From Cyanophora paradoxa CCMP329 (Eukaryota > Plantae > Glaucophyta), in assembly GCA_004431415.1 (NCBI GenBank), contig QPMI01000428.1, positions 310,001 to 374,000 on the forward strand: a stretch of DNA of 64,000 bases. Direction: 5' to 3'. Positions 3,133-39,850 of this stretch are shown in pieces. Below the pieces are notes generated by a model. That model was not told where the DNA came from and searched no databases. It saw only the letters and a list, made by a program, of their open reading frames with translations. Within the stretch, counting starts at the first letter, position 1; every line of letters starts with the position of its first letter. Made by a program: the position numbers and the translations under genes.

Positions 3133-3485
3133 GGCGGCTAGCCCCCAAATTAGGGTGGACGCGACCACCAAATTAAGCTCCCCCGCTAGATCGCCCGGGT
3201 CGCCGGGCCGGGGCCCATCGCCCAGGGCGCGCACAGACTCCGCGCATGTTCCTACGCCTTTATATACATGCATATAAGATAGAGCACCCCTGTGAAACTT
3301 CAGAATCCGGGTTCTCAACACTCGGCGGGCCTTAGATCGAATTTGCCTCGGGCGGAATAGATCCGGGATCGCCGAAATTGCTGAGTTGCGAACGGTTTAG
3401 CTGGACTTAACAATAGGTAGCTAGCGACTCCGTGACGGGTCGGAGTTTCCTAGCTATAGTAGCTGGGTAAATGAGAAGGTCCTAT
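3133..3485. repeat. ~353 bp dispersed repeat, copy 2
   Basis: Direct repeat of 713-1066. Confidence 0.92.
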
Positions 3486-3517: not shown

Positions 3518-4408
3518 TAGCTAGCGCTGCGCTAGCTATATATAGCGCGCGCCGCGCCGCGCCGGCGCGGCCCAGCGCGCGGCCCGGCGGCCGGTCCACC
3601 GACGCGGTCCGACGGTCCGGCGACGGACCACCGTATACGTGAGTAACGTGACGGCACGTCGCGTCGGCCGCGGTCCATGGTCGACGCTAGTACTAGTCGG
3701 ACGTCGACGTGGTCTCCGGCGACTCTCCGCTCGTCCGTCGTCGTCAAAAAATTGCGAGTGTGGTACCCCGGGCCCGGCCTGGGCAGTGGGCAGGCGCGCG
3801 CCGCCGGCCCGCCGCCGGGCCGGCGCCGGGCCGGCCCGCGCCGCGTCCCGCCGGCCGCCGGCCGGTACCGCTGGTAGCAGCAAAAGCCGGCCAGCCGCGC
3901 GGCTTCGGGGCCCGGCTCGGCTAGTGCCTGGCCGCCCGGGCGCCGGCGCCGGCCGGCCGGGCTAGCGCTGGCCGGGCCTGGCCCGGCCCTGGCCCGTCAG
4001 GCCGGGCCGGCCCGGGCGCCGGGCCGCCGCCGGCGCCGGCCCGGCGGCACGGCGCCGTGACGGCGGCCGGCGGGACGCGGCGCGGGCCGGCCCGGCGCCG
4101 GCCCGGCGGCGGGCCGGCGGCGCGCGCCTGCCCACTGCCCAGGCCGGGCCCGGGGTACCACACTCGCAATGTTTTGACGACGACGGACGAGCGGATCGGA
4201 GAGTCGCCGGAGACCACGTCGACGTCCGACTAGTACTAGCGTCGACCATGGACCGCGGCCGACGCGACGTGCCGTCACGTTACTCACGTATACGGTGGTC
4301 CGTCGCCGGACCGTCGGACCGCGTCGGTGGACCGGCCGCCGGGCCGCGCGCTGGGCCGCGCCGGCGCGGCGCGGCGCGCGCTATATATAGCTAGCGCAGC
4401 GCTAGCTA
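3518..4408. mobile_element. Foldback / long-TIR non-autonomous element (arms ~343 bp, spacer ~200 bp)
   Basis: 3518-3860 is the near-perfect reverse complement of 4061-4408, differing by a 5 nt insertion and a 1 nt change. The ends are TA-rich and there is no credible coding capacity. Confidence 0.8.
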
Positions 4409-20723: not shown

Positions 20724-20734
20724 GCGCAGGGGCC

Positions 20735-20765
<31 letters not shown>

Positions 20766-20766
20766 T
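20724..20766 (-). pseudogene. U6: U6 snRNA fragment (catalytic core: ACAGAGA box, AGC triad, 5' side of the ISL)
   Basis: Minus strand AAAATTGGAACGATACAGAGAAGATTAGCATGGCCCCTGCGC equals the conserved U6 core. It lacks the 5' stem-loop, the 3' half and a Pol III terminator, and is flanked by a GTGGCGC direct repeat. Confidence 0.93.
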
Positions 20767-22061
20767 TGTGGCGCGGGATCCGGATCTCAACCATAAATTC
20801 TTTTTCTAAATTCGGTTGCAGGCAGTATACGTACGCGTACGCCGAAGCGCACTTCCAGCTCGCGCGCGATCTGCTGGGCACAGGAGGCGAGCCATGCATA
20901 TGCCGCGACGTCGACGCACTGCGGCGGCACTAGTTCGCGACGCACTTCGAGCGCCGAGTTTCAGGCTCTGATCAAGACCCGATCGCGAGCGCAGGAGCGC
21001 CCTGCACACGCCCTTCGCTCGTGATCGTGATCACGCAGCTGTGCCGACGTTTTCCGCAGGCCTAGGAGGCGGAGCGCGGCGCCGGCGTCCTCGGCCCCTT
21101 CGTCGAGGCCGGCCTCTGCGAGTCGCCCTCCTGGCGCTCCCTCGAGCGGCTGCTGCTGCCCCGCCTGCGCGCCCGGCCCGGCCGCAGGTACCGGTCTAGA
21201 CGCCCATGCATGCATATATACGGCCACTCGCCCGAGCTCGAGAGCAGGCTGACGCCGCTCAGCGGCGCCGGCTGGCGGGTCCTGGCCATGGCAGGACGTC
21301 ACCCAACTGACTTCGAATTCCGGATCCATGGTGCGGGATCCAACATCAGGGACGTCAGAGGAAAGGGTCACATAAAAGTGTCACATACAGGAAAGGGGAA
21401 ATTAAAGGATCAGGGACGTCAGAGGAAAAAGGTGCTAGCGCTGGACCGTCGGACCTCTGAGGAAATTTTAAAGGGTCACATACACTGCAGCTGTGAAAGG
21501 GAAAACGCATAAGCATCGATATCCTCACCCGCGTTGACGGGTAGACGTCGACTCGCCTAAAAATATACGTGCAGCCTTTGCAGATTGCTGGCTTCAACAA
21601 ATCCTTGCCTTTGGACCTAAGCTCTACACAGTACATTGCCCAGCCCGGCAGGTTTCGACCGTTTCGCTGCATGAGGAAAACGGACGAGCTGCTGAGCTGA
21701 GCACTGAGCTACCACTGGCTGCACTGAATACTCAGATCTAGAGCTGGATACTGCACTGGCTACCACTGAGCTAGCAGGAAACTGGTACTACCACTGGATA
21801 TATATACCTGAAACGTACACCGATGTTCTCATTGTAACTGGTACTGACACTGGATGCTGTACATGTTTACATGTGATGCCCTGGTGGGCTTCTTAGAAAA
21901 CACAGCTCCAAGCCCCACAGACGGCGTTCATCAGCAGAACTCGAGCCCGCAAGAATAGCATGGGTTCTAAAAACTATAGCTTCTGTGCACAAATTTCAAC
22001 GAAGTTCAACGCTAATCTAGACGATTGAAAGGAAATGTTGAAAGCAACCAACAGCCAGCTC

Positions 22062-25000
22062 TCAGGCCGAGGCTGTGGGGGTCGGAGTGGTCGGAGTGGG
22101 GGGTACCGACGCCGGTGATTCGAAGGGCAGGGACCGCGGCCGCTGCTTGGCCGCTTCACAAGCGCCGTCTTCTCCCCCGGCGTCCGCTTTGGCGGCGCGG
22201 GCAACGGCGGCGACGGAGGATCGGCGGGCCCGCGGGGCCGCCGGAGGCGTCTGGAGAAAGCCTGGAGGGGCGGCTGCCGTGTGCCCAGCTTCACGCGGCG
22301 CCGGCGACGGCTCTTCTGCCGCCTCGTGAACCGACGGGAGGGCGGCCGGCGCAGCGGCTGGGCCCTGAGCTGCTGCCGCGCCCGGCCGCGGGCTGCGCTC
22401 GCCGCTCGCCGCCGGGGGCGGGGCCAGCTGCCCGGGCCCGTTCTCCGCTGCGGGGGCGGGGGCGGGGGCGCCCCACTGGCGGAGGACGGGGAGGAGGACG
22501 GCGCGCGAGACGGGCTTCCCGATGTGCCCGTCCATCCCGCCCCCAGCGCCGCCGCCCGGTCCGCCTCCGCCGTGAACGCCGTGCACGCTGCCCCCGCCCC
22601 CCGCCGTCAGCGGCGCGGAGCGCGAGGCGCGGGGCGGGGCGGGCGGACCGACGACGGGGGTGCGGGCGGCGGGGCCGAGGCCGAGGGCGCGCTCGAGCTC
22701 GCGGATGCGGCGCGTGGCCTCCATCCCGTCCACCCGCGGCATCGCGATGTCCATGAAGACCAGGTCGAAGGCCGCCCGCCCGCCCCCGCCCGCCGCCGCC
22801 GCCCGCGCGCGCGCCTCGAAGGCGGCGACGGCCTCCTCGCCGTCCCGCGCGGTGGCCGTCGCGTGGCCCTCCTTCGCGAGGAACGCGCAGAGGACCTTCC
22901 GGTTCATCTGCCGCCGCCCCGCGCTCGGCCCCGCGCGGCGCGGCGCGGCGCGGTAGGCGGCGGGCGGCGGGCGGGGCGCACGTCGTTGTCGTCGACGACG
23001 AGGATCTGCAGCGGCGCCGCGGCCGGCGCCGCGGCGGCGGCGGGGGCGGAGGCTGCGGCGCCGGCAGACGCGGCGGACGCTTGCGCGCGGCCGGCGGAGC
23101 CGAGGGCGCGCAGCGATCTCGTCTTCCGCGCGCCGGCGGCGGCCTCGCCCGAATCGGCGGTCGAGCACTCCGCGCCCTCGGAGGTCGCCGAGGCGACGGA
23201 CGAGGCGATGGAGGCCCGGCGCGAGGGGCCGCCCGCCGCCGGCGCCCGCAGGAGTCCGGCGGGGTACGCCCACGCGGCGCCCTCCTCTTCCGGCCCCGCG
23301 GGCGCGCCGCCGGGACCGCCGGTGCCGGAGGGGGAGACCGGGGCCCGCTGCGGCGACAATTCGCCCGCTCGCGCCGCGTTCAGCGACGGGGCCGCCGGCG
23401 CCGGCGCCGGCCGCGGCCCGCCGTCCTCCGCCGCAGGCGGCCGCGGGCTGCGCTCGCCGCTCGCCGCCGGGGGCGGGGCCAGCTGCCCGGGCCCGTTCTC
23501 CGCTGCGGGGGCGGGGGCGGGGCGCCCCACTGGCGGAGGACGGGGAGGAGGGCGGCGCGCGTGACGGGCTTCCCGATGTGCCCGTCCATCCCCGCCGCCA
23601 GCGCCGCCGCCCGGTCCGCCTCCGCCGTGAACGCCGTGCACGCTGCCCCCCGCCCCCGCCGTCAGCGGCGCGGAGCGCGAGGCGCGGGGCGGGCGGACCG
23701 ACGACGGGGGTGCGGGCGGCGGGCCGAGGCCGAGGGCGCGCTCGAGCTCGCGGATGCGGCGCGTGGCCTCCATCCCGTCCATCCGCGGCATCGCGATGTC
23801 CATGAAGACCAGGTCGAAGGCCGGCCGCCCGCCCCCGCCCGCCGCCGCCGCCCGCGCGCGCGCCTCGAAGGCGGCGACGGCCTCCTCGCCGTCCCGCGCG
23901 GTGGCCGTCGCGTGGCCCTCCTTCGCGAGGAACGCGCAGAGGACCTTCCGGTTCATCTGCCGCCGCCCCGCGCTCGGCCCCGCGCGGCGCGGCGCGGCGC
24001 GGTAGGCGGCGGGCGGCGGGCAGGGCGCACGTCGTTGTCGTCGACGACGAGGATCTGCAGCGGCGCCGCGGCCGGCGCCGCCGCCGACGCGGCCGAGCCG
24101 AAGGATCCGTGGCGCGACCGCGCGGGCGCCGAGGAAGGATCGAGGGAATCCTCGGAGCGAATCGAGGCGCGCGAGGTCCGGCGCGACCCCCAGGCAGTCA
24201 CAGCCGCGGCGGAGGCCGATTCCTCGGAGGCCGAGGGCCGGCGCGACCTCGAGGCAGCCGGGGGCCCGTCCGCGGCCGCAGCCCCGACCGCGGAAGGGAC
24301 GGTACAATCTTCCGGGGCGGCGGCAGCGGCGGGTGTGGTGGCAGGGGCGGGCGGCGGGGCCTCCGAGGGCCGGAGGCTGCCGCCTCCATCGGGCGGGCCG
24401 GGTGCGGGAAGGCACGCGAGATCCTGCGGGGCCCCGCTCAAGCTCTCAGGGGCGCCGGTGGCCTCCAGGGCGCCTCCAGCGGCCCCCGCGCCCTCCGCCT
24501 CCGGGTCCCCTGCGACGGCGACCGCGTCACCCCAGCGGAACGAACGCGAAACGAACCCGCGCGGGGTCGAACACGCACCGCCCGATTGGGGCGCTCGGCC
24601 CGGCTCCGAATTCGGGGGCTCCCCGTCGCCGGAAGACAGACGTTCTCGCGTGGACCGCGGGCTACCGCTGGAATCCGAAGGGGAGGGAAGAAGAAGGACG
24701 GCGGGCGGGGGGGGGGACCCCGAGTCGGGCGGGGGAGGAGCAGCGGGCGTAAACCCGACCCCGTGGGGGGAGGAGACGAAGCGCGCGCCGGAGCAGGAGC
24801 CGGAGCCGGAGCCGGCGGAGTGGCCACCGGGCGAGCGCCTGCCTGAGAAGCTGCGGCGCAGCCCGAGGGAGATACCGGCGAGGGCGGCCGACGAGCGGGT
24901 GACCGGCGAGCGCAGCGGCGGCGCCGCCCCACCCGAGGGGCCGGCGAGGCCGCCGCCGGAGCTCGCAGAGGGGACGGGCGGCGCCACGCCGCTGGAGCCG

Positions 25001-28000
25001 CTGGCGCGGCGCGCCTCTCCGAGGCTGCCGCGGCGGCTCTCGGGGGGTACGAGAACGAGGTGGGACGAGCCCCCACTGCTGCGCCGGGACCGCGGCGGAT
25101 TCCGCTGTGGTGGCGGATCTGAGGATCTCCGCGGCGCTGCGGAGCCGATCGTAAGGGGCTTGAGAGGGGCGGCCGAGGGTCGCGGGGCGCGCGCACGGAT
25201 GTGGAAGGGTACCGAGAAGAAGAAGCGGGAGCCCTCCCCCGGGGCGGAGCGGCAGCCGATGGTACCCCCCGAGCGCTCCACGATCTGCTTCGTGATCGCG
25301 AGGCCGAGGCCGGTACCCCCCGGGTCGGGGCGGCCGCCGAGCTCGAGCGGGGCGCGGTAGAAGCGCGTGAAGAGCTGCCGCTGCGCCTCCTCGTCGATCC
25401 CGACGCCTGCGCCCCCGCCCCGCTCGGCCGTGGCGGGGGTACGCGCTCGCCAAGGCGGGTACCCCGCGCACCCTCGTCCGAGACCTCGAAGTACAGCGTC
25501 GTCGTACCCGGGGCATCGCCCCCCGGCGGCGGCTCGGCGCGGACGGTGACCTGCGGGGGGTACGTGAGAAAGGGGAGGGGGCCGGGGAGGGGTACGGGCG
25601 CGCCTTGACGGTCCCCTGGAAGCTGTACTTGCTGCGGGGTACGAAGATCAAACCGGGCGGGTGAGGGGGGGAGGAAGCGGGAAACTGGGGGTACCACGCG
25701 TTGTTGACGAGGTTGATGAGCGCCTCTGCCGAATCGCGGGGCACCGTCGGCGGGGGGAAGGCGGGAGGGGGGCGGGGGGAGGCCCCGCGGGGGGGTACGG
25801 GGGCGCACGGCGGAGCCTGTCGGGGTCGCCCTCGAGCGCGGCGGGGATCGCCGCGTCGATCTCGACCTCCATCAAGAGGCCCTTCTCTTGTGCCTGCACG
25901 GGCCAGCGGGTGCGGGGCGTCAGAGGGCGGCCTGGGCCGGGGCGGGGGGCGGGCACCTTGAGCTGGGTGATGCGGGCGGCGCCCTCGACGACGTCGTCCA
26001 CGCAGAAGGGCACCCGCCGCAGCTCCAGCTGCCCCGCCTCGATCCGCTGCGCCGAAAGACGAGGGGCCCGGGCCGGTCAGGAGGGGTGGGAGCGAGGGGG
26101 GCACGCGCGGGGACCTGGAAGTCGAGGATGTCGTTGACGAGGAAGAGGAGGTGCTCGGAGCAGCTGAGAGCGCTCTGCGGGCGGGCGGGCCGAGGCGAGC
26201 AAGCGCGTCTCAGAGGCGGGAAGGCGCCGGGCCGGGCCAGGCCAAGCCAGGCCGCATAGTTCTCCTGCAGCGCGCCGCGCCAGCCAGCACGGACCTGCAG
26301 GTTCTCCTGCGCCTCGGGCGGGATCTCGAGGTCCAGCGTCAGGTCGATCATCCCTGCCGCGGGGGCCGTCAGGAGGGGGGTTCGCGCCCCCGCAGCTGGC
26401 CCGACCCGCGCACCCATGATCCCGTTCTGATTGCAGCGAGAGGGCGGGCGGGCGGGGAGCGTCAGCGGCGGCGGTGAGAGGCGAGGGGCGGGAGCGAGGG
26501 CCGCGGCGCACGAGCGGCGTCCTGCGGAGGGGCGCCGCGGAGAGAGAAGAGACAGGCGAGTCAGCGGAGCGAGCGAACGGAGGGGCAGAGGAGATGGAAG
26601 AAGAAGAGGGGGCGGACCGCATCTCGTGGGAGACGGTCTGGAGGAACTTGTGGGAGCTCTCGGCGCGTATCCGCAGCTCCATGCGCGCCGCCGCCTCGCG
26701 CGAGACGACGTCGCTGAAGGAGAGGAAGCCCCGCCGGATGTCCCGCACCACCGGCTGCCCCCGGGGCGCCCGTCAGCCCCGGGCGGCCCTCGCGTAGCCC
26801 GGGCGGCTCGCCTGGAAGCGGGAGAGCTCGGCGAGGGCGTAGCGGGCCGAGCCCGAGCGCGTCGTCGAGGCCGGGCTCCCGTAGTCCGGCTCCGGCAGCT
26901 CCTCCTCCTCCTCCTCTTCCTCCTCCTCCTTCCGTGGGGCCTTCGAGGCCGGCCGGGGCAGGCTCTCCCGAAGGCGCCGCCCGAGGCCGCGCCAGTCCGA
27001 CCAGCTGCCCCGCCGCGAGGGCGCCGGCGTCGCCTTGCTCCCGGCCCCGCCGCCCCCGCCCAGGAGTATGGAGACCTGGGACGAGGCGGCGGCTCCGCCG
27101 GCCCGACCAGCCGAGTCTGCCGGCCCGGGCCCACCCCGGCGCCCGCTGCCCGACCCCGCGGGGCCGGCGTTGCTCGCACGGATGTGGCCCGTCATCTCGG
27201 CGGTCAGGACCTGTGTGCAAGAACGTCGGGCGCGCAGGGGGTACGGGGACCGGCGAGCCCGCTCGGGCGAGCATGCGTACCCCCAGCTCGTCCACGAAGG
27301 TCCTCATCTGCCTGTACACCTGCGGGAGGCGTACCCCGGATCGATTCATCAGAGGCCGCGGTCGGGGTACAGGATTCGACAAGAAAGAGCGCGTACCCGG
27401 TCGAGGGGCTTGGTGATCAGGACGGCGACGTACACGGCCCCGACGACGGCGAGGAGGAGCCAGACCTGCGGGCCCGCGGCGGCTCGTCGGGGGCTCGCGC
27501 TGGGGCGCCGGGCCGGGGCGCCGCGCACCGCGTTGCAGACGGATACGATGACGATGGACGTGCGCAGCTGCTGCAGGATCGCATCCTGCGGAGGGTACGC
27601 GTCTCGCGGGGCGACGGGCGGGACGATAGGCTGCGGGGGTAGGGGAACAGGAGCTCGCGCGCCTTGGGGACGGCCGTGTAGAGCCGCCAGCAGAGGTTCG
27701 GCTCCTGCGGGCGGGCGCGGACCTCAGAGCCGGCGCGTGGCGCGGGGCGGGGCCCCTGCTCTCTGCTCTCTGCTTCCGAGGCGGCGGCGGGGCGGGGCGG
27801 GGCGGGGCGCACGAAGTCGACGTGCTCGTGGACGGCGAGGTACGCGCGGCCCCCGATGCCCATCTCCTGCACCGTCCCGCCCGGGGCGCTGACCTCAAGC
27901 TGCGCCGAGCGTGAGGCGAAGTGATCCGGGCGGGCGAGCCGAGCCGGCCTTGCGTGAGGCGCGGTGATCTGAGCGCTTCAGACGCCACGGCGCGGAGCCG

Positions 28001-30276
28001 CGCACCGGGTAGGCACTAATGATAGCCTTGACCATGCCGTCGCCGCTCTCCGACGCCCTCAGCAGCCTCCCCGCCCTGCCGGCGCCCGCTGAGCCCGAGG
28101 AGGAGCGGCGGGGCGTGCGCGCGGGCGCGCAGGGCGCGGGTTCACCTGTCGACGACCAGCGACGGGTCCCCGCTCGTGGCGACCATGTGACCGGTCCCTG
28201 CGCACACGGGCCGCTCGGCGGGGGCGGCCCGCAGCACGGCAGGCCGCGCGGCGCACCTTCCTCGACGAGCATCGAGAAGCCTCCCGCCAGCTGCGCGGGG
28301 CGCCGCGTCAGCGCGGCCGCTGTGGAGCAGCGAGCGGCCTCGCGGCGCCAGCGGCGGGGGCGCGCCTTGAAGTTGACCTCGGCGGACTCGCCCTCCCGCG
28401 CGTCCCACGCCGTCGCGAGCAGGTCCGAGAGCTTCGCGAGCGACAGGGTGATCTGCGCCCGCTTGGGTCGGCAACCGGACAGGAAGGCAAGGGCGAGAAA
28501 GCGAAAGACAGCGGACAGAGATGGTGCCGATGTAGGGGGCGTCCAGGCCCTTGGCGTTGTCCGCCATGGGCGAGATCCCGCGCGTCTCCGGCACGTTCGG
28601 CACGCCCGCCGGCACGTAACTGGGCGGACAGCGCTCACGAGAGACGGGCAGGTCGGCGGGACGGAGCTGGGCGGCGCGCACGTCGCGAAGTCGCTGGGCG
28701 CGGGGAGGCTCTTGAAGGCCCGCGAGTACCTGCGAGGGCGCGCGCGGGGTCGGATCGGCCCGCCCGCCGCGCCCCTCGCGCGGGCGGGTGGAGCTCGAGA
28801 CGGGGCGCGCGCGCGCACGTCACGGAGAGGCGGTGGATGGGATCGCTCTGCGCGCGCGAGCAGACGCGTCAGCTCTGCGAGAGCGTCCGCGCCGGCGCCG
28901 GCCGCGTCGGGCGCGGACCTCGGGTGCGTCGTCCATGAACACGTTGCACCACTGCGTCTTCTCGGCGCTCGCGAGGGCCGCCGCGACGCTGCGCCGTCGG
29001 TGAGCCGCGCCGTCGCCGTCGCTGGCGGCGGCGTCGGTGGCCGGTGTGCGGCCTGGCGGGCGCACCACCCCTCCTTGTCGGGGTGCTTCGCATAGCCCGC
29101 GCGCGTCGCCTGATCGCGCGGGGCGGGCGGTCGGTGAGCTGAAGGCGGGAAGGGAGCGGGGCAGGGCGAGGGGCACGTGGAAGGTCGTTGGCTGGCCGCG
29201 AAGCGACGCGGCCCACGTAGTCGTGTGGGTGCCTGCGGGCGCGCGGGCGGGCCCGGCCGGCGTCGGGGGGCGCGGGACGGGAAGAGGGGCGCGCCGCACC
29301 GTTGAAAGCGTAGACCCAAGGGCCTATGCAGGCGGGCGAGCCAGGGGGGGTGACGGGGCAGGCCTGCAGGGCCGAAGGGATCGAATTCGAAGAGGCGAAC
29401 AGGGCGGGCGGCCGGGGCGGGGGCACTCGGACCCGGGAGCCGTACACCGTGTCGCTCGAGTTGCGCCCAAGGTACGAGATGAAGAGGCCAGTCATACCGT
29501 CCACCGCCGCCACGCTCCGGTGGCAGAACTCGAAGAGCTCGCGCCAGTGTTCCGGCCGCAGCGCCGCCTGCCGAGCGCGAGCGTCCGTCAGTGGCGCCGA
29601 TGTCGGACGCTGTCCCACGCTAGTGAACGTTAACACGCTGGCTATCGGTTTCGGTGCCGCGGAACCCTTTCTCATGCTCAGTGCTAACGAACCGTCTCGA
29701 GGCGGTTGCGCCCGCCCTTGGCCGCGAACATGGGGTTGCCAAAGTAGCCGTGTACTGCGGCGCGGCGAACGCGTTCGGCGCGCGGCCCCCCCGCGCGGGC
29801 GGCAGGCCGGGAGCAGCGCACTGGAATTGAGCGCTTCGATAGAGACTCTGCGCATGCGCGGATCGAATCAGCACGGAGCGATAGCGCCGGGCCGGGGCGC
29901 GACTTGTGCATGAAGAGGTGAGCGACGTCCTCGACGCTGCGGGCGCGGGCGACGATATCAAACACGGGACGACGACGCGTCGAGACGCGCGTACGCACTT
30001 GCGCAGCCCAAGCATGAACGTGACCACCCAGCTGAACGCCGCGGCCCCGACGACGCACAGAACGCATGTTATGATCACTATCCCGCGGATGCTCAGCCGT
30101 TGCTTGCCGGGCGGCTTCGAATTCTTCCCCGCCTTAGGCACCACGCTGCTGCCGTGCACTCCGGGCGCTCCTACATCTGCGTATACCGGCTGCTTGTCCC
30201 CGCCGGCGTTGAGGACGCGGCTGTCTCTGGATGTTCCCAGACATTCAGCTGCGGAATACGTGGGCGTCCTCTCCAT
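22062..30276 (-). CDS. Membrane-bound hybrid sensor histidine kinase, paralogue A (TM-Cache-like sensor-TM-HisKA-HATPase_c-linker-REC-REC)
   Basis: Spliced: GIVIITCVLCVVGAAAFSWVVTF (TM1); VWLLLAVVGAVYVAVLITKPL (TM2); FLQTVSHEMRTPLNGIMG (H box); QALINLVNNACKY (N box); VSDEGVGI (G1); GGTGLGLAITKQIVE (G2); two copies of ILVVDDN..FDLVFMDIAMP..CTA..GKP. A few homopolymer frameshifts. Confidence 0.93.
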
Positions 30277-30574
30277 GATGACTGATCGAAGCCGCAGCGG
30301 TGCCGCGTGGCGGAGGGGCGTACTACGTCCTGCTTTCTCCGCGTCGTCTAGTTATAGATCTAGAGAGCGAAAGCTTCATCGCCTGCTTGGCTGAGGCGTC
30401 GACAGAAGGACCGAAGGTGCGGCCCTTGGTCGTCCGGCTGGGGGCACTGCGGCACGCGTGTGCTGCAGTTGGGTGGCTCTACTTCAAAGTACTCGCCGAG
30501 ACCGGCTGCAGCCTCCAGCTGGAGTTGCTAGACTCGCTACCAGAGTCGCTGGTGCGAAGCTTCGAAGAGACAGC

Positions 30575-31006
30575 TAGGGACTACCCCTCGCCACCTTGAC
30601 AAGGTGGCCTTGAGCGCCTCACCACCTTGGCAAGGTTGCCTTAAGGTCCCGCCATAGAAATTATGCGCCATACAAATCGTGCAGCAAGCTTACAATTGAC
30701 TCGATCCAACATTAAATCTTGCATCTAATAGTCGATCGCTTCTTCAGGTTTAGTATTCCTTGTCGCGATTGGCTTGAATTAAGCGGTTTTCTACCAATAC
30801 AGCGCCAGACGGGGGGGTCAGACCGACTCAGACGTCGACGTGGTCCGCGCCAGACGGGGGGGTCAGAGCTGGCTGCTCCCACACAAAAATTTTGTATGGG
30901 CGGACCTTGCACTCACCTTGAACACCTTGCGACCTTGGCAAGGTCACCTTAAACGGCCAAAAAAGCACCTTAAACGCAAGGTGGTTCCTTGCAAGGATAG
31001 TCCCTA
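30575..31006. mobile_element. hAT-type MITE with an 8 bp TSD
   Basis: GAGACAGC|TAGGGACTA ... TAGTCCCTA|GAGACAGC (TSD 30567-30574 and 31007-31014); many subterminal ACCTT/AAGGT motifs. Confidence 0.9.
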
Positions 31007-31520
31007 GAGACAGCAGCGATGGGGGTACCGGTACGCTCAATAGCGGGCGGTTTGATCGAACGCTTCGGCCTGCCGACCTGCCCAACGCCGGCTGTGGCGC
31101 GCACATACGTAGAGCAATCCACCCGTAGAACACCTGCCCCCGGCCAGCCGAGCGACCAGACGCACGTACGGGCGGTCGCCGCCGGTCGGGCTATCGAGAC
31201 GTCAGCCGCCGCCGACCCACCAGTGTAGCCAACTTCAGAGGCCCAGTCACCACCGCTGCAGCGAAGAAGCGTGGATCGCGGCCCGGCTTCGCCAGTTTTC
31301 CGCCTTGGTCCAGCCTCCTCGGCGGCACCCTCCCCGATGGGGCAGGCGATGAAGCTCTCGTTCTCGATAACCATACGATTCGGTGAATGCAGGACGTAGT
31401 GACGCTCCTTCGGTATGCACGCGGGCTCCGGACCGGATCCGGCTCGATCTCCCTAGGCATCCGATCGATATCCGCGGCCGGTCCAGTTGCACGGGCCCGG
31501 TGACACTCCGCGGCGGCCAC

Positions 31521-34500
31521 ATGGAAAGGACGCCCACGTATTCCGCAGCTGAATGTCTGGGAACATCCAGAGACAGCCGCGTCCTCAACGCCGGCGGGGA
31601 CAAGCAGCCGGTATACGCAGATGTAGGAGCGCCCGGAGTGCACGGCAGCAGCGTGGTGCCTAAGGCGGGGAAGAATTCGAAGCCGCCCGGCAAGCAACGG
31701 CTGAGCATCCGCGGGATAGTGATCATAACATGCGTTCTGTGCGTCGTCGGGGCCGCGGCGTTCAGCTGGGTGGTCACGTTCATGCTTGGGCTGCGCAAGT
31801 GCGTACGCGCGTCTCGACGCGTCGTCGTCCCGTGTTTGATATCGTCGCCCGCGCCCGCAGCGTCGAGGACGTCGCTCACCTCTTCATGCACAAGTCGCGC
31901 CCCGGCCCGGCGCTATCGCTCCGTGCTGATTCGATCCGCGCATGCGCAGAGTCTCTATCGAAGCGCTCAATTCCAGTGCGCTGCTCCCGGCCTGCCGCCC
32001 GCGCGGGGGGGCCGCGCGCCGAACGCGTTCGCCGCGCCGCAGTACACGGCTACTTTGGCAACCCCATGTTCGCGGCAAAGGGCGGGCGCAACCGCCTCGA
32101 GACGGTTCGTGGGAGCGAAGTGCGAATTAGAGCGCTGCCGCATCGAAATGGATGGCGGGGGGCGTCACCTGCAGCTAGAAGCGCCGCTGACGGACGCTCG
32201 CGCTCGGCAGGCGGCGCTGCGGCCGGAGAACTGGCGCGAGCTCTTCGAGTTCTGCCACCGGAGCGTGGCGGCGGTGGACGGTATGACTGGCCTCTTCATC
32301 TCGTACCTTGGGCGCAACTCGAGCGACACGGTGTACGGCTCCCGGGTTCGACCCCCGCCCCGGCCGCCCGCCCTGTTCGCCTCTTCGAATTCGATCCCTT
32401 CGGCCCTGCAGACCTGCCCCGTCACCCCGACCGGCTCTACAGCGTGCCAGAGCCCTTGGGTCTACGCTTTCAACGGTGCGGCGCCTCCTTTGCCGTCCCG
32501 CGCCCCCCGACGCCGGCCGGGCCCGCCCGCGCGCCCGCAGGCACCCACACGACTACGTGGGCCGCCTCGGACCGCGGCCAGCCCACGATCTTCAGCGTAC
32601 CCCTCGCCCTGCCCCGCTCCCTTCCCGCCTTTGGTTCACCGACCGCCCGCCCCGCGCGATCAGGCGACGCGCGCGGGCTATGCGAAGCACCCCGACAAGG
32701 AGGGGTGGTGCGCCCGCCAGGCCGCACACCGGCCGCCGACGCCGCCGCCGTCGGCGACGGCGCGGCTCACCGACGGCGCAGCGTCGCGGCGGCCCTCGCG
32801 AGCGCCGAGAAGACGCAGTGGTGCAACGTGTTCATGGACGACGCACCCGAGGTCCGCGCCCGACGCGGCCGGCGCCGGCGCGGACGCTCTCGCAGAGCTG
32901 ACGCGTCTGCTCGCGCGCGCAGAGCGATCCCATCCACCGCCTCTCCGTGACGTGCGCGCGCGCGCCCCGTCTCGAGCTCCACCCGCCCGCGCGAGGGGCG
33001 CGGCGGGCGGGCCGATCCGACCCCGCGCGCGCCCTCGCAGGTACTCGCGGGCCTTCAAGAGCCTCCCCGCGCCCAGCGACTTCGCGACGTGCGCGCCGCC
33101 CAGCTCCGTTCCGCCGACCTGCCCGTCTCTCGTGAGCGCTGTCCGCCCAGTTACGTGCCGGCGGGCGTGCCGAACGTGCCGGAGACGCGCGGGATCTCGC
33201 CCATGGCGGACAACGCCAAGGGCCTGGACGCCCCCTACATCGGCACCATCTCTGTCCGCTGTCTTTCGCTTTCTCGCCCTTGCCTTCCTGTCCGGTTGCC
33301 GACCCAAGCGGGCGCAGATCACCCTGTCGCTCGCGAAGCTCTCGGACCTGCTCGCGACGGCGTGGGACGCGCGGGAGGGCGAGTCCGCCGAGGTCAACTT
33401 CAAGGCGCGCCCCCGCCCCCGCCCCCGCCCCCGCCGCCGCGAGGCCGCTCCGTAGCCGGCGCGCTGACGCGGCGCCCCGCGCAGCTAGCGGGAGGCTTCT
33501 CGATGCTCGTCGAGGAAGGTGCGCCGCGCGGCCTGCCGTGCTGCGGCCCGCCCCCGCCGAGCGGCCCGTGCGCGCAGGAACCGGCCACATGATCGCCACG
33601 AGCGGGGACCCGTCGCTGGTCGTCGACAGGTGAACCCGCGCCCTGCGCGCCCGCGCGCGCGCCCCGCCGCTCCTCCTCGGGCTCAGCGGGCGCCGGCAGG
33701 GCGGGGAGGCTGCTGAGGGCGTCGGAGAGCGGCGACGGCATGGTCAAGGCTATCATTAGTGCCTACCCGGTGCGCGGCCGAGCGCCGCGCGCGCGCGCCT
33801 TGCAGCGCTGCGCCGCGGGGCGGGGCGCCTTACGCCCTTCCCGCCCGCCCGCTTTTCCGCAGCTCGGGGGCGACGGCGGGGACGACGGCCTTGTGCAGGA
33901 GATGGGCATCGGGGGCCGCGCGTACCTCGCCGTCCACGAGCACGTCGACTTCGTGCGCCCCGCCCCGCCCCGCCCCGCCGCCGCCTCGGAAGCAGAGAGC
34001 AGAGAGCAGGGGCCCCGCCCCGCGCCCCGCGCCGGCTCTGAGGTCCGCGCCCGCCCGCAGGAGCCGAACCTCCGCTGGCGGCTCTACACGGCCGTCCCCA
34101 AGGCGCGCGATTCCCCGTATCCCCAAACGCCCCTACCCCCCTTTACCCTCCGCAGGACGCGATCCTGCAGCAGCTGCGCACGTCGATCATCATCGTATCC
34201 ATCTGCAACGCGGTGCGCGGCGCCCCGGCCTCGCGCCCCGGCGCCCCGGCGCGAGCCCCCGACGAGCCGCCGCGGGCCCGCAGGTCTGGCTCCTCCTCGC
34301 CGTCGTCGGGGCCGTGTACGTCGCCGTCCTGATCACCAAGCCCCTCGACCGGGTACGCGCTCTTCCCGTACCGTCGAACCATGTACCCCGACCGCGGCCT
34401 CTGATGAATCGATCCGGGGTACGCCTCCCGCAGGTGTACAGGCAGATGAGGACCTTCGTGGACGAGCTGGGGGTACGCATGCTCGCCCGAGCGGGCTCGC

Positions 34501-37500
34501 CGGTCCCCGTACCCCCTGCGCGCCCGACGTTCTTGCACACAGGTCCTGACCGCCGAGATGACGGGCCACATCCGTGCGAGCAACGCCGGCCCCGCGGGGT
34601 CGGGCAGCGGGCGCCGGGGTGGGCCCGGGCCGGCAGACTCGGCTGGGCGGGCCGGCGGAGCCGCCGCCTCGTCCCAGGTCTCCATACTCATGGGCGGGGG
34701 CGGCGGGGCTGGGAGCAAGGCGACGCCGGCGCCCTCGCGGCGGGGCAGCTGGTCGGACTGGCGCGGCCTCGGGCGGCGCCTTCGGGAGAGCCTGCCCCGG
34801 CCGGCCTCGAAGGCCCCACGGAAGGAGGAGGAGGAAGAGGAGGAGGAGGAGGAGCTGCCGGAGCCGGACTACGGGAGCCCGGCCTCGACGACGCGCTCGG
34901 GCTCGGCCCGCTACGCCCTCGCCGAGCTCTCCCGCTTCCAGGCGAGCCGCCCGGGCTACGCGAGGGCCGCCCGGGGCTGACGGGCGCCCCGGGGGCAGCC
35001 GGTGGTGCGGGACATCCGGCGGGGCTTCCTCTCCTTCAGCGACGTCGTCTCGCGCGAGGCGGCGGCGCGCATGGAGCTGCGGATACGCGCCGAGAGCTCC
35101 CACAAGTTCCTCCAGACCGTCTCCCACGAGATGCGGTCCGCCCCCTCTTCTTCTTCCCTCTCCTCTGCCCCTCCGTTCGCTCGCTCCGCTGACTCGCCTG
35201 TCTCTTCTCTCTCCGCGGCGCCCCTCCGCAGGACGCCGCTCGTGCGCCGCGGCCCTCGCTCCCGCCCCTCGCCTCTCACCGCCGCCGCTGACGCTCCCCG
35301 CCCGCCCGCCCTCTCGCTGCAATCAGAACGGGATCATGGGTGCGCGGGTCGGGCCAGCTGCGGGGGCGCGAACCCCCCTCCTGACGGCCCCCGCGGCAGG
35401 GATGATCGACCTGACGCTGGACCTCGAGATCCCGCCCGAGGCGCAGGAGAACCTGCAGGTCCGTGCTGGCTGGCGCGGCGCGCTGCAGGAGAACTATGCG
35501 GCCTGGCTTGGCCTGGCCCGGCCCGGCGCCTTCCCGCCTCTGAGACCCGCTCGCTCGCCTCGGCCCGCCCGCCCGCAGAGCGCCCTCCGCTGCTCCGAGC
35601 ACCTCCTCTTCCTCGTCAACGACATCCTCGACTTCCAGGTCCCCGCGCGTGCCCCCCTCGCTCCCACCCCTCCTGACCGGCCCGGGCCCCTCGTCTTTCG
35701 GCGCAGCGGATCGAGGCGGGGCAGCTGGAGCTGCGGCGGGTGCCCTTCTGCGTGGACGACGTCGTCGAGGGCGCCGCCCGCATCACCCAGCTCAAGGCGC
35801 CCGCCCCCCGCCCCGGCCCAGGCCGCCCTCTGACGCCCCGCACCCGCTGGCCCGTGCAGGCACAAGAGAAGGGCCTCTTGATGGAGGTCGAGATCGACGC
35901 GGCGATCCCCGCCGCGCTCGAGGGCGACCCCGACAGGCTCCGCCGTGCGCCCCCGTACCCCCCCGCGGGGCCTCCCCCCGCCCCCCTCCCGCCTTCCCCC
36001 CGCCGACGGTGCCCCGCGATTCGGCAGAGGCGCTCATCAACCTCGTCAACAACGCGTGGTACCCCCAGTTTCCCGCTTCCTCCCCCCCTCACCCGCCCGG
36101 TTTGATCTTCGTACCCCGCAGCAAGTACAGCTTCCAGGGTACCATCAGGGCGCGCCAGTTCCCCTCCCCGTCCACCCCTCCCCCGCCCCCTCCTCTCACG
36201 TACCCCCCGCAGGTCACCGTCCGCGCCGAGCCGCCGCCCGGGGGCGACACCCCGGGTACGTTGACGCTGTACTTCGAGGTCTCGGACGAGGGTGCGTGGG
36301 GTACCCCCCTGATGGGCGCGTACCCCCGCCACGGCCGAGCGGGGCGGGCGCGCAGGCGTCGGGATCGACGAGGAGGGGCAGCGGCAGCTCTTCACGCGCT
36401 TTTACCGCGCGCCGCTGGAGCTCGGCGGCCGCCCCGACCCGGGGGGTACCGGCCTGGGCCTCGCGATCACGAAGCAGATCGTGGAGCAATCCGGGGGTAC
36501 CATCGGCTGCCGCTCGGCCCCGGGGGCGGGCTCCCGGTTCTTCTTCTCGGTGCCCTTCCGCATCCGTGCGCGCGCCCCGCGACCCTCGGCCGCCCCTTTT
36601 GAGCCCCTTCCGACCGGCTCCGCAGCGCCGCCGAACTCTGGGGAGCCGTTAGTGCGGCGGTCACGGCAGGGGAGCGTCACGTCGTCCCACTTGCTGCCGC
36701 CGCAGAGCCGCCGCGGCAGCTTCGGTGAGGCGCGCCATCCCAGCAGCTCCATCGGCGCGCTGTCCGTCCCCTCTGCGGGCTCTGGCGGCGGCGTCGGAGG
36801 CCTCGCTGGCCTCTCTGGCGGGCTGGGGCTGCCCTCGCCGGTCACCCGCTCGTCGGCCGCCGCCGCCGCCGGGGCCGGGGCAGGGGCCGGCGCCCGCGGC
36901 TCGGGCGGCAGGCCCCACGGGCTTCAACGCACTTTCTCCGGCAGGCACTCGCCTGGGACCCTCGCCCTCGCCGGCGCCGGCGCGCGCTTCGTCTCCTCCC
37001 CCCACGGGGTGGGCTTCGTCGCCGTGGCTCACGCGGACGACGGGGCCGGCGGCGGCGGCGGCGGCGGCGCCGGCCCATCCTCTCCTTCGCTCCTGGCCGC
37101 GCCGCCCCTTCTCTTCCTCCCTCCTCCCGGGCCCACCGCTAGCCATAGCCCTCGGCTTCAAATTGCTTTGGACGCTCCACCGCACCGCCGCCGCCGCTCA
37201 GACCCATCGCCGCGGCACGCGCCGCCCGGCGGCGCTGCGCGGGGGGGCCGCCGCCGCTCCGACCCGCCCCCAGGCCATGCCGCGCCGCCGACGGCAGCAG
37301 ACGGTGCGGGTTCTGATACGCGGCAAACGTTCTCCGTGGGTCTACGCGTGACGCGGCCGCAGGGGACGCGGCGAGCAGCGGAGACACGGCGAGCGCCTGC
37401 GACGCCGAAGAAGACATGGAGGGGCACAGCGGGCTCCACTCCCCGGTATCTCCTCGCGCCCCAAATCTAAACACCCGGGCTTCTTCTTTGACGCCCATGT

Positions 37501-39850
37501 TTCAGGCGGCCGAGGCCGACGCGCAGCCGCGCGGCGCCGCGCGCCTGTCGTCACTACTCGAAGCTGAGGCTGAGTCAGCGACTGCGGACGCGAGCAACGG
37601 CGGCGGCGGCGGCGAGGACGGCGGCGGCGGAGAGCAGCCTGCGACGCGCCTGAAGCTCGAGGCGCCCACGGAATCGGACCAGCGGGGGTCGCGCCGGCCC
37701 TCGCGCGCCTCCATTCGCTCCGACGATTCCTTCGTTCCGCTCGCGGCCGCCGCCGGCGCCTCCCCGGCGCCCGCGCGGTCGCGCCACGGATCCTTCAGCT
37801 CCGCCGCGTCAGCGGCGGCGCCGGCCGCGGCGCCGCTGCAGATCCTCGTCGTCGACGACAACGACGTGCGCCCCGCCCGCCGCCCGCCGCCCGCCGCGCC
37901 CCGCGCCGCGCCGCGCGGGCCGAGCGCGGGGCGGCGGCAGATGAACCGGAAGGTCCTCTGCGCGTTCCTCGCCAAGGAGGGCCACGCGACGGCCACCGCG
38001 CGGGACGGCGAGGAGGCCGTCGCCGCCTTCGAGGCGCGGGCGCGGGAGGTGGGGCGGGCGGGGGCGGGCGGACGGCGTTCGACCTGGTCTTCATGGACAT
38101 CGCGATGCCGCGGATGGACGGGATGGAGGCCACGCGCCGCATCCGCGAGCTCGAGCGCGCCCTTGGCCTCGGGCCCGCCGCCCGCACCCCCGTCGTCGGT
38201 CCGCCCGCGTCTCCCCGCTCCTCGCGCCGCGCGCCGCTGACGGCGGCGGGCAGCGTGCACGGCGTTCACGGCGGAGGCGGACCGGGCGGCGGCGCTGGCG
38301 GCGGGGATGGACGGGCACATCGGGAAGCCCGTCACGCGCGCCGTCCTCCTCCCCGTCCTCCGCCAGTGGGGCGCCCCCGCCCCCGCCCCCGCCGCAGCGG
38401 AGGCCGGGCCCGGGCAGGCGGCTCCGCCCCCGGCGGCGAGCGGCGAGCGCAGCCCGCGGCCGCCTGCGGCGGAGGACGGCGGGCCGCAGCCGGTGCCGGC
38501 GCCGGCGGCCCCGTCGCTGAACGCGGCGCGAGCGGGCGAACCGTCGCCGCAGCGAGCCCCGGTCTCCGCCTCCCGCCCCGCCGGCGCGCCCGCGGGTCTG
38601 GAGGAAGGCACCGCGTGGGGGTACCCCTCCGGCCTCCTGCATGCTCCGAGCGCGGGCGGCCCCTCGCGCCGGGCCTCCGTCGCCTCGTCCGTCGCCTCGG
38701 CGGCCTCCGAGGGCGCGGAGGGCTCGACCGGTGATTTGGGCGACGCCGCCGCCGGTGCGCGGAAGACCCGATCGCTGCGCGTCCTCGGCTCCGACGCCGG
38801 CGCCTCCCCGGCGCCCCCGCGGTCGCGCCACGGATCCTTCAGCTCCGCCGCGTCAGCGGCGGCGCCGGCCGCGGCGCCGCTGCAGATCCTCGTCGTCGAC
38901 GACAACGACGTGCGCCCCGCCCGCCGCCCGCCGCCCGCCGCGCCCGCGCCGCGCCGCGCGGGCCGAGCGCGGGGCGGCGGCAGATGAACCGGAAGGTCCT
39001 CTGCGCGTTCCTCGCCAAGGAGGGCCACGCGACGGCCACCGCGCGGGACGGCGAGGAGGCCGTCGCCGCCTTCGAGGCGCGCGCGCGGGCGGCGGCGGCC
39101 GGCGGCGGGGTACGGGCGGCCTTCGACCTGGTCTTCATGGACATCGCGATGCCGCGGATGGACGGGATGGAGGCCACGCGCCGCATCCGCGAGCTCGAGC
39201 GCGCCCTCGGCCTCGGCCCCGTCGCCCGCACCCCCGTCGTCGGTCCGCCCGCCCCGCCCGCCCGCCCCCGCGCCGCCGCTGACGGCGGCGGGCGGCGGGC
39301 AGCGTGCACGGCGTTCACGGCGGAGGCGGACCGGGCGGCGGCGCTGGCGGCGGGGATGGACGGGCACATCGGGAAGCCCGTCACGCGCGCCGTCCTCCTC
39401 CCCGTCCTCCGCCAGTGGGGCGCCCCCGCCCCGTCCCTCGCAACGGAGGCCGGGCCCGGGAAGGTGGCCCCGCCCCCAGCGGCGAGCGGCGAGCGGAGCC
39501 CGCGGGCAGGCGCGGCAGCAGCAGCTCTGGGCCCAGCCGCAGCGCCGGCCGCCCTCCCGTCTGTCCACGAGGCGGCAGAAGAGCCGTCCCCGGCACCTCT
39601 CGAAGTTGGGCACACGGCAGCCGCCCCTCCTCCGGGCTCTCTCCTGGCGCCGCCGGCGGCCCCGCGGGCCCGCCGCGCCTCCTTTGCCGTCGTCCCCGTC
39701 CCCTCAACGACCGGTGACGCCTCCGAGGGGGCCAAGCAGCGGCCGTGGTCCCTGGACGCTTTCGAGCTGGTACCCCCCGCCGACAACGCCCCCGGGGCCC
39801 CGCAGCTGTTGCCGTTGTCCTCCGCCTCCACCGCGTCCGGATCCGCTTGA
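31521..39850 (+). CDS. Membrane-bound hybrid sensor histidine kinase, paralogue B (same architecture as A, inverted)
   Basis: MERTPTYSAAEC.. start, with the same H/N/G1/G2 boxes and two receiver domains; largely the reverse complement of 22062-30276, introns included. Confidence 0.93.

Follow-up and report, generated by a model that had tools for sequence, protein, structure and literature searches.

Palindromic hybrid histidine kinase genes of Cyanophora paradoxa: a mosaic of identity best explained by gene conversion between the arms

The stretch of DNA analysed here, called the window throughout, comprises 64,000 nt of the genome of the glaucophyte Cyanophora paradoxa CCMP329 (assembly GCA_004431415.1, contig QPMI01000428.1, positions 310,001 to 374,000 of the forward strand). 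It contains a 17.8 kb imperfect palindrome, the arms of which are two divergently transcribed genes for putative hybrid histidine kinases, flanking a spacer of 1242 nt. A first-pass annotation, made from the letters, had placed two inverted, head-to-head genes here with their ends at 22062 and 39850, and the mapped proteins end exactly at these positions, at stop codons. The left-arm gene, tig00020603_g11806 (22062..30276, minus strand), encodes a protein of 1847 amino acids (aa), hereafter P0002, with 37 annotated exons; the right-arm gene, tig00020603_g11807 (31521..39850, plus strand), encodes P0001, with 1816 aa and 41 annotated exons. Both proteins were mapped onto the window by spliced exact matching, with 100% of their residues placed, and the database proteins served as the reference gene models. 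P0001 (EukProt EP00741 Cyanophora paradoxa, tig00020603_g11807.t1) was the one protein returned by an exhaustive HMMER search with the frame-2 open reading frame (ORF) at 31521-33452, and P0002 (tig00020603_g11806.t1) was recovered by a word search with the P0001 sensor. The kinase exons that we read by hand agree with these two models. The introns are short (60-120 nt), with GT and some GC donors and (C)GCAG acceptors, and the exons include micro-exons of 10 and 13 nt. A dynamic-programming gene finder recovered most of the exons, but it overused GC donors and took the divergent intron 4 for coding sequence, and it was superseded by the protein mapping.

An inverted-repeat search of the region from 20 to 42 kb gave 29 arm pairs, which jointly form one large imperfect palindrome. 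The innermost pair lies at 29641-30277 / 31520-32156, and the longest, 1809 nt with 99% identity, at 25572-27380 / 34373-36181. When the reverse complement of the left arm was globally aligned with the right arm, the similarity was found to span from 30277/31520 outward to about 22200/39700, with none beyond, and identity was 91.5% over 7999 aligned columns, with 546 gap columns. The same alignment showed no relation between the flanks of one gene and those of the other, on either the 5′ or the 3′ side. The palindrome sits inside contig tig00020603 with unique flanks on both sides, and its G+C content is 75-81%, against 52-60% in the flanks.

The spacer (30277..31520), which comprises the divergent promoter region, is the diverged inner part of the palindrome. 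It had been described as an upstream region of about 1.2 kb common to the two genes; the length holds, but the two halves are not identical and constitute a strongly diverged continuation of the palindrome, in which 30322-30431 and 31342-31414, adjoining both ATGs, are complementary at 77-82%, with indels. At 30590-30640, 30802-30867 and 30916-31007 the spacer carries repeated short hairpin words of the CACCTTG-n-CAAGGTG type, roughly symmetric about the centre, as well as a 21-nt exact direct repeat, the copies of which are 45 nt apart. These elements may be promoter motifs, insulator motifs or remnants of the original centre of the palindrome.

Each gene is predicted to encode a membrane hybrid histidine kinase composed of a first transmembrane helix (TM1), a sensor, a second transmembrane helix (TM2), a DHp domain, an ATPase domain, a disordered linker and two tandem receivers. 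That such kinases occur in this eukaryote, as the first-pass annotation had it, is borne out by the Pfam matches of the C. paradoxa proteins to HisKA, HATPase_c and Response_reg. Hydropathy analysis found exactly two membrane segments, at aa 59-92 and 447-482, enclosing a loop of about 355 residues. Below, residues and positions refer to the right gene (plus strand), followed by the positions of the left copy (minus strand). TM1 (aa 59-92) lies at 31695..31796 (left copy 30001-30102), the predicted extracytoplasmic sensor (aa 93-446, exons 1-19) at 31797..34170 (27571-30000), and TM2 (aa 447-482) at 34171..34349 (27400-27570). The HisKA/DHp domain occupies exons 23-28, which include both micro-exons, at 35104..35721 (26032-26649); Pfam matches HisKA at aa 665-727 with E=3.8e-18, and the H-box, with the phospho-acceptor His672 at 35125-35127, can be read directly over the exon 23/24 junction. 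The HATPase_c (CA) domain follows at 35923..36561 (25201-25830), with a Pfam match at aa 774-895 (E=8.1e-26) and with the N, G1, F and G2 boxes visible in the translation. Then comes the low-complexity linker at 36566..37760 (24135-25196), over which the two copies are barely alignable. By analogy with bacterial and plant sensor kinases, binding of a ligand outside the membrane would control autophosphorylation of His672, to be followed by phosphotransfer to a receiver Asp.

The sensor is probably a double Cache/PDC module, as suggested by its language-model features. A module of about 355 residues between two transmembrane helices, N-terminal to the transmitter, has the topology of the dCache_1/double-PDC sensors, and the language-model neighbours of the sequence are bacterial dCache_1/MCP-like_PDC_1 clusters (scores of 0.95 with the entire loop and of 0.96 with the first half of it). 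The proposal of a Cache-like sensor thus agrees with the language-model features; the profile searches gave no Pfam dCache or HAMP match. Indeed, no Pfam family was matched by the sensor at E<=10 apart from a spurious Med3, neither PF02743/PF22673 nor CHASE (PF03924) being found at that threshold, and Pfam detected no HAMP domain after TM2. Word searches with the P0001 sensor returned only P0001 and P0002, with length limits that could miss shorter relatives, and a word search with the frame-2 ORF gave no match. The exhaustive HMMER search brought up no distant relatives, which is weak evidence as the query ORF held only about 200 real residues, and tblastn of the sensor against plasmids yielded nothing useful. 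AlphaFold2, run on the two-sequence alignment, gave models of low confidence, with a pLDDT of 32.6 for the sensor with its transmembrane helices and of 34.2 for the first module alone. In these models aa 179-218 form a coil between the second strand and the helix preceding the third strand of the first module, a region which, from what is generally known of Cache domains, we take to border the ligand pocket.

The similarity of the two arms is far from even. Segment-by-segment alignment was carried out over the first 33 exons (E1 to E33) and 32 introns (I1 to I32), where both gene models are collinear. Eighteen of the 33 exons and 13 of the 32 introns are identical between the copies, and overall the exons are 2.7% diverged as against 6.5% for the introns (p=7e-11). 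Exact identical runs of 550, 447, 388, 358 and 341 nt, introns included, are interspersed with abrupt islands of difference. When the 238 differences were permuted 5000 times, no run came out longer than 295 nt (550 nt observed) and the three longest never added up to more than 542 nt (1385 nt observed); the variance-to-mean ratio of the number of differences per 100 nt is about 14. Identity is hence a mosaic, as had been noticed at first sight, and uniform divergence along the arms is refuted. The longest homogenised tract, at 34382..36139, stretches over about 1.76 kb from the HAMP-like linker as far as the N-box, takes in 10 exons together with their introns, and holds 6 single differences.

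The islands are sharply bounded; most of the sharp ones are situated in introns or linkers, and four of the sharpest are purely intronic: I4 (32105..32210; left copy 29568-29692) is 34% different, with a 19-nt indel; I13 (33405..33484; 28291-28365) is 23% different; I16 is 44% different and unalignable; and I18 (34103..34155; 27586-27662), 34% different, has no detectable similarity to the left copy. The I16 island runs on into the first ten codons of E17 (33770..33892; 27873-28005), an exon which is 16% different, with eight consecutive differing codons and a one-codon indel. A further island extends from E6 to I7 (32412..32663; 29110-29363) and corresponds to aa 179-218; here E6 and E7 are 18.8% and 14.3% different, respectively, while the flanking I5, I6 and I7 differ at 1.5%, 6.2% and 6.0%. 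Towards the end of the collinear part, E31 to E33, in the ATPase domain, are 6-15% different, and the linker beyond E33 can barely be aligned. Donors for the scrambled intron islands were sought within the window, and only low-complexity matches were found. The four peptide differences first quoted between the copies are all present, although the 'VP' at the end of one of them belongs to an intron.

Purifying selection cannot explain the identical runs, because they include introns, whereas gene conversion can. Arm-to-arm gene conversion, already proposed in the first-pass annotation, is well supported by the sequence pattern as the best explanation of the mosaic. Two features usually sought in a conversion palindrome are found at this locus, namely inverted arms around a diverged spacer, and identical tracts that are too long and that take in non-coding DNA (550 against 295 nt; 13 of 32 introns identical). 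The duplication itself looks old, as the differences amount to 20-45%, or defeat alignment, in the DNA upstream, in several introns and in the linker: the spacer retains only 77-82% inverted similarity by the ATGs, with indels, and I16 and I18 share nothing detectable. Repeated non-reciprocal recombination between the arms would have overwritten most of the gene body, introns included, and the sharply bounded islands would be what remains, either unconverted or replaced.

Could the two arms be a product of assembly, through a chimeric join of haplotypes or a hairpin-read artefact, there being only one gene? The assembly paper does put the 'duplicate' sequence at 34.7 Mb when compared with the older assembly, and the multi-mapping reads at 18.5%. 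However, a hairpin artefact would give identical arms without a spacer, and the arms observed differ by unalignable introns, by a diverged linker of 1.1 kb and by many indels. Mis-joined haplotypes, for their part, would have promoter and 3′ flanks in common, whereas the spacer and the 3′ flanks are unrelated between the arms; this, and the fact that k-mer and single-nucleotide polymorphism analysis favour a haploid genome, reported as probably haploid (PMC6704402), argue against such a join. The location of the palindrome inside a contig, between unique flanks, also speaks against an artefact, and we hold this explanation to be very improbable.

Where the amino-acid differences fall bears on the function of the pair. 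Among residues 1-895 there are 31 differences, 21 of them in the sensor (binomial p=0.003); the others are distributed as 1 in the cytoplasmic linker, 1 in DHp and 8 in the ATPase domain (aa 790-895), or 9 with R895H. In the whole protein, by far the most differences are in the linker and the tail. The view that the differences are concentrated in the sensor is thus right within residues 1-895, but it has to be set against the 9 replacements of the ATPase domain, the linker and tail, and the four islands that are intronic. Likewise, the transmitters, said to be near-identical, are so in DHp, with its single difference, but not in the ATPase domain.

For the coding regions, the joined coding sequences were built from the mapped coordinates, and the ratio of non-synonymous to synonymous substitution rates (dN/dS) was found to be 0.38 overall, 0.48 in the sensor and 0.27 in the ATPase domain. 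It is 0.64 in the three exon patches together, and reaches about 2 in E17, but over its first ten codons only, a Gly/Asp-rich stretch beside the unalignable intron. The patches and the ATPase domain do not differ significantly in their ratio of non-synonymous to synonymous differences (Nd:Sd; p=0.16). These values do not bear out the idea that diversifying selection has acted on the sensor patches. On the other hand, E6 and E7 together (120 nt) carry 20 differences, and the three introns that flank them (198 nt) carry 9 (odds ratio 4.2, Fisher p=0.0005). This peak of an exon over its introns is the pattern expected if selection resists conversion there; it is only suggestive, since the comparison was picked post hoc among about 30 exons.

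Red/green opsin duplicates provide the precedent for such a peak. Their sequences are homogenised by conversion except for a divergence peak in exon 5, which lies between introns of low divergence (Teshima and Innan 2008, reviewed in PMC3924837), and the exon peak is taken as a sign that selection keeps the duplicates functionally different in the ligand/chromophore-tuning part of the protein (PMC3924837). The E6-E7 peak of the C. paradoxa pair matches this exon-5 signature in that an exon maximum stands between less diverged introns. The two cases differ, however, in that the opsin sites are functionally proven and the kinase pair is known by its sequence, and in that the kinase pair has dN/dS values below 1, with no excess of amino-acid-changing over silent change at E6+E7, and similar peaks in introns.

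It is with this precedent that one may envisage a functional kinase pair, in which conversion keeps the signalling core interchangeable, so as to allow heterodimers and a common pathway, while selection keeps the ligand-facing patches apart and maintains two specificities. The E6-E7 peak, the excess of differences in the sensor, the dimerisation helices of DHp with one differing residue, and the placement of aa 179-218 by the low-confidence models near the presumed border of the Cache pocket are all in line with this idea. However, dN/dS exceeds 1 only in the ten codons of the Gly/Asp loop, the Nd:Sd ratio of the patches resembles that of the ATPase domain, islands as sharp are found in I4, I13, I16, I18 and the linker, the ATPase domain has its own replacements, and the left gene lacks an intact receiver as assembled. 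We regard a pair of this kind as unlikely. Its specific, opsin-like form, in which selection would block conversion over some 40 residues of the first Cache module (aa 179-218, which include a Cys-flanked loop), so that an interchangeable core would serve two related ligands in one pathway, possibly through heterodimers, seems to us rather unlikely.

The C-terminal parts of the genes add a second level of repetition. In each gene the receiver unit occurs twice in tandem, at a period of about 1045 nt, and all four copies show 97-100% identity over some 650 nt, two introns included. Some of the variants are common to the units within an arm and others are common between the arms; the same conversion process that homogenises the arms would act among the four units. 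Pfam finds Response_reg twice in P0001, the best stretch being aa 1541-1667 (E=4.4e-34). Only unit R2 (38886..39400, plus strand) is intact as assembled; it retains Asp1601, at 39140-39142, and Lys1659. R1 (37842..38345, plus strand) lacks one nucleotide after 38052 when compared with the three other units, and its frame is thereby broken ahead of the phospho-acceptor Asp. On the minus strand, L1 (23526..24054) and L2 (22470..23005) have in-exon 1-nt gaps at 23726 and 22539, respectively, which leaves the left gene without an intact receiver in this assembly. Copy-specific single-base gaps in the G/C runs of the receivers were thus seen at 38052, 23726, 22539 and 23523, three of which break the frame. 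The annotated models owe their oddities to these gaps: they run on through introns or leave out the exon bearing the Asp, as the P0001 model does with part of R1.

The longest stop-free frame of the locus, of 703 aa, also lies here, at 37502-39613 on the minus strand, antisense to the receiver region. It is expected by chance, since the DNA is about 80% G+C, and it illustrates the need for caution with the 'bidirectional ORFs' reported for the C. paradoxa genome.

As the gaps lie in a four-copy repeat, they may well be errors of assembly or polishing, or they may be real decay. In the latter case the left copy, or both first receivers, would be decaying, and the right gene, with its intact R2, would be the working one, next to a partly converted pseudogene kept healthy-looking by conversion. 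The copy-specific frame breaks in L1, L2 and R1, and the annotated models that read through introns or skip the Asp exon, can be cited in favour of decay. However, each of the breaks concerns one base within a G/C run, and the repeat is present in four copies, a setting in which the polishing of a PacBio RSII/Quiver assembly can be trusted least; this assembly was produced by PacBio RSII/Canu/Quiver with Illumina correction (PMC6704402). Moreover, the other 33 exons (2.7 kb) carry no frame break in either copy, and dN/dS values of 0.27-0.48 indicate either constraint on both copies or very recent conversion. Decay of the left gene, or of both first receivers, is in our opinion quite unlikely.

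The explanation that we favour, and consider likely, is that the palindrome is formed by real paralogous genes and that the conversion mosaic is mainly a neutral by-product of their concerted evolution, with E6-E7 possibly held apart by selection. Several points weigh against it. The palindrome and the continuity of its axis are those of the assembly, and conversion is deduced from the pattern at this one locus. The intronic islands could reflect recent replacement of sequence instead of old remnants. The Cache assignment comes with neither a Pfam match nor a usable structural model, and a PDB sequence search with the sensor returned no match either. As for the selective part of the explanation, dN/dS in E6+E7 is 0.39, and the choice of these exons after the fact reduces the weight of their peak.

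As a case of conversion between inverted arms, the locus can be compared to the palindromes P1-P8 of the human Y chromosome and to those of the X, which have the same inverted arms around a unique spacer and owe the identity of their arms to intrachromosomal conversion, including in non-coding DNA (PMC3723533, PMC8981503). Unlike these sex-chromosome palindromes, the Cyanophora locus is about 1000 times smaller, has one gene per arm, an arm identity of 91.5% and sharply bounded unconverted islands, and belongs to a probably haploid unicellular alga.

The proteins, in turn, resemble the bacterial dCache_1 sensor kinases and chemoreceptors (PF02743/PF22673), with which they share the succession of a transmembrane helix, a module of 350 residues and a second transmembrane helix, followed by the transmitter. 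They differ from them by the lack of a Pfam or PDB match and of a canonical HAMP domain, by their eukaryotic genes with approximately 40 introns, and by their long disordered linker and two receivers. The plant cytokinin receptors AHK2/3/4 are likewise membrane hybrid kinases, with a PDC-type sensor between two transmembrane helices and a kinase core, followed by a first (pseudo) receiver and then a second, true receiver. The C. paradoxa kinases have no CHASE match, and in contrast to the AHK2/3/4 arrangement of an old receiver-like domain plus a receiver, their receivers are recent tandem duplicates of each other.

The gene pair represents a familiar kind of gene-pair evolution. It offers a small and clean example of concerted evolution in a glaucophyte, with conversion operating, as we read it, at two levels, that of the palindrome arms and that of the four receiver units. 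It also brings two membrane sensor kinases, their sensor probably of the Cache type, to an alga that is credited with a single one in a published survey of eukaryotic histidine kinases based on the 2012 assembly (PMC6324907); g11806 and g11807 are missing from that survey, though they exist as predicted proteins. The two genes are not listed in the available part of the supplement text of the genome paper (PMC6704402), and our literature search brought up no paper dealing with either gene conversion or palindromes in Cyanophora. If selection does maintain the E6-E7 peak, the peak points to the residues that determine the ligand specificity of a eukaryotic Cache sensor not otherwise recognisable as such, and the hunt for the ligands becomes tractable. 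More generally, when 'hypervariable patches' are met in gene pairs that C. paradoxa carries in inverted orientation, a conversion mosaic should be the first reading, and the frame breaks of the receivers need checking at the level of the reads before the gene models are used.

Some minor observations concern the introns of the pair and the DNA to the left of the palindrome. The donor of intron I28 is GC in the right copy (35797) and GT in the left (25956), and a confidently placed intron at 36150 likewise opens with GC, which suggests that GC-AG introns are tolerated fairly often at this locus. Left of the palindrome there is a perfect hairpin-like inverted repeat, 3518-3860 / 4061-4408, with arms 100% and 99% complementary and a loop of about 200 nt, as well as a 300-nt direct repeat of 100% identity, 723-1022 / 3142-3441, the copies of which are 2.4 kb apart; this hairpin and direct repeat could be a mobile element, a small palindrome or an assembly artefact. 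Finally, Rfam matches U6 snRNA at 20724-20786 on the minus strand, 1.3 kb past the stop of the left gene, with 45.8 bits for a gathering score of 44. The match covers model positions 1-66 of 105, that is the 5′ two-thirds, and looks like a truncated U6 copy.

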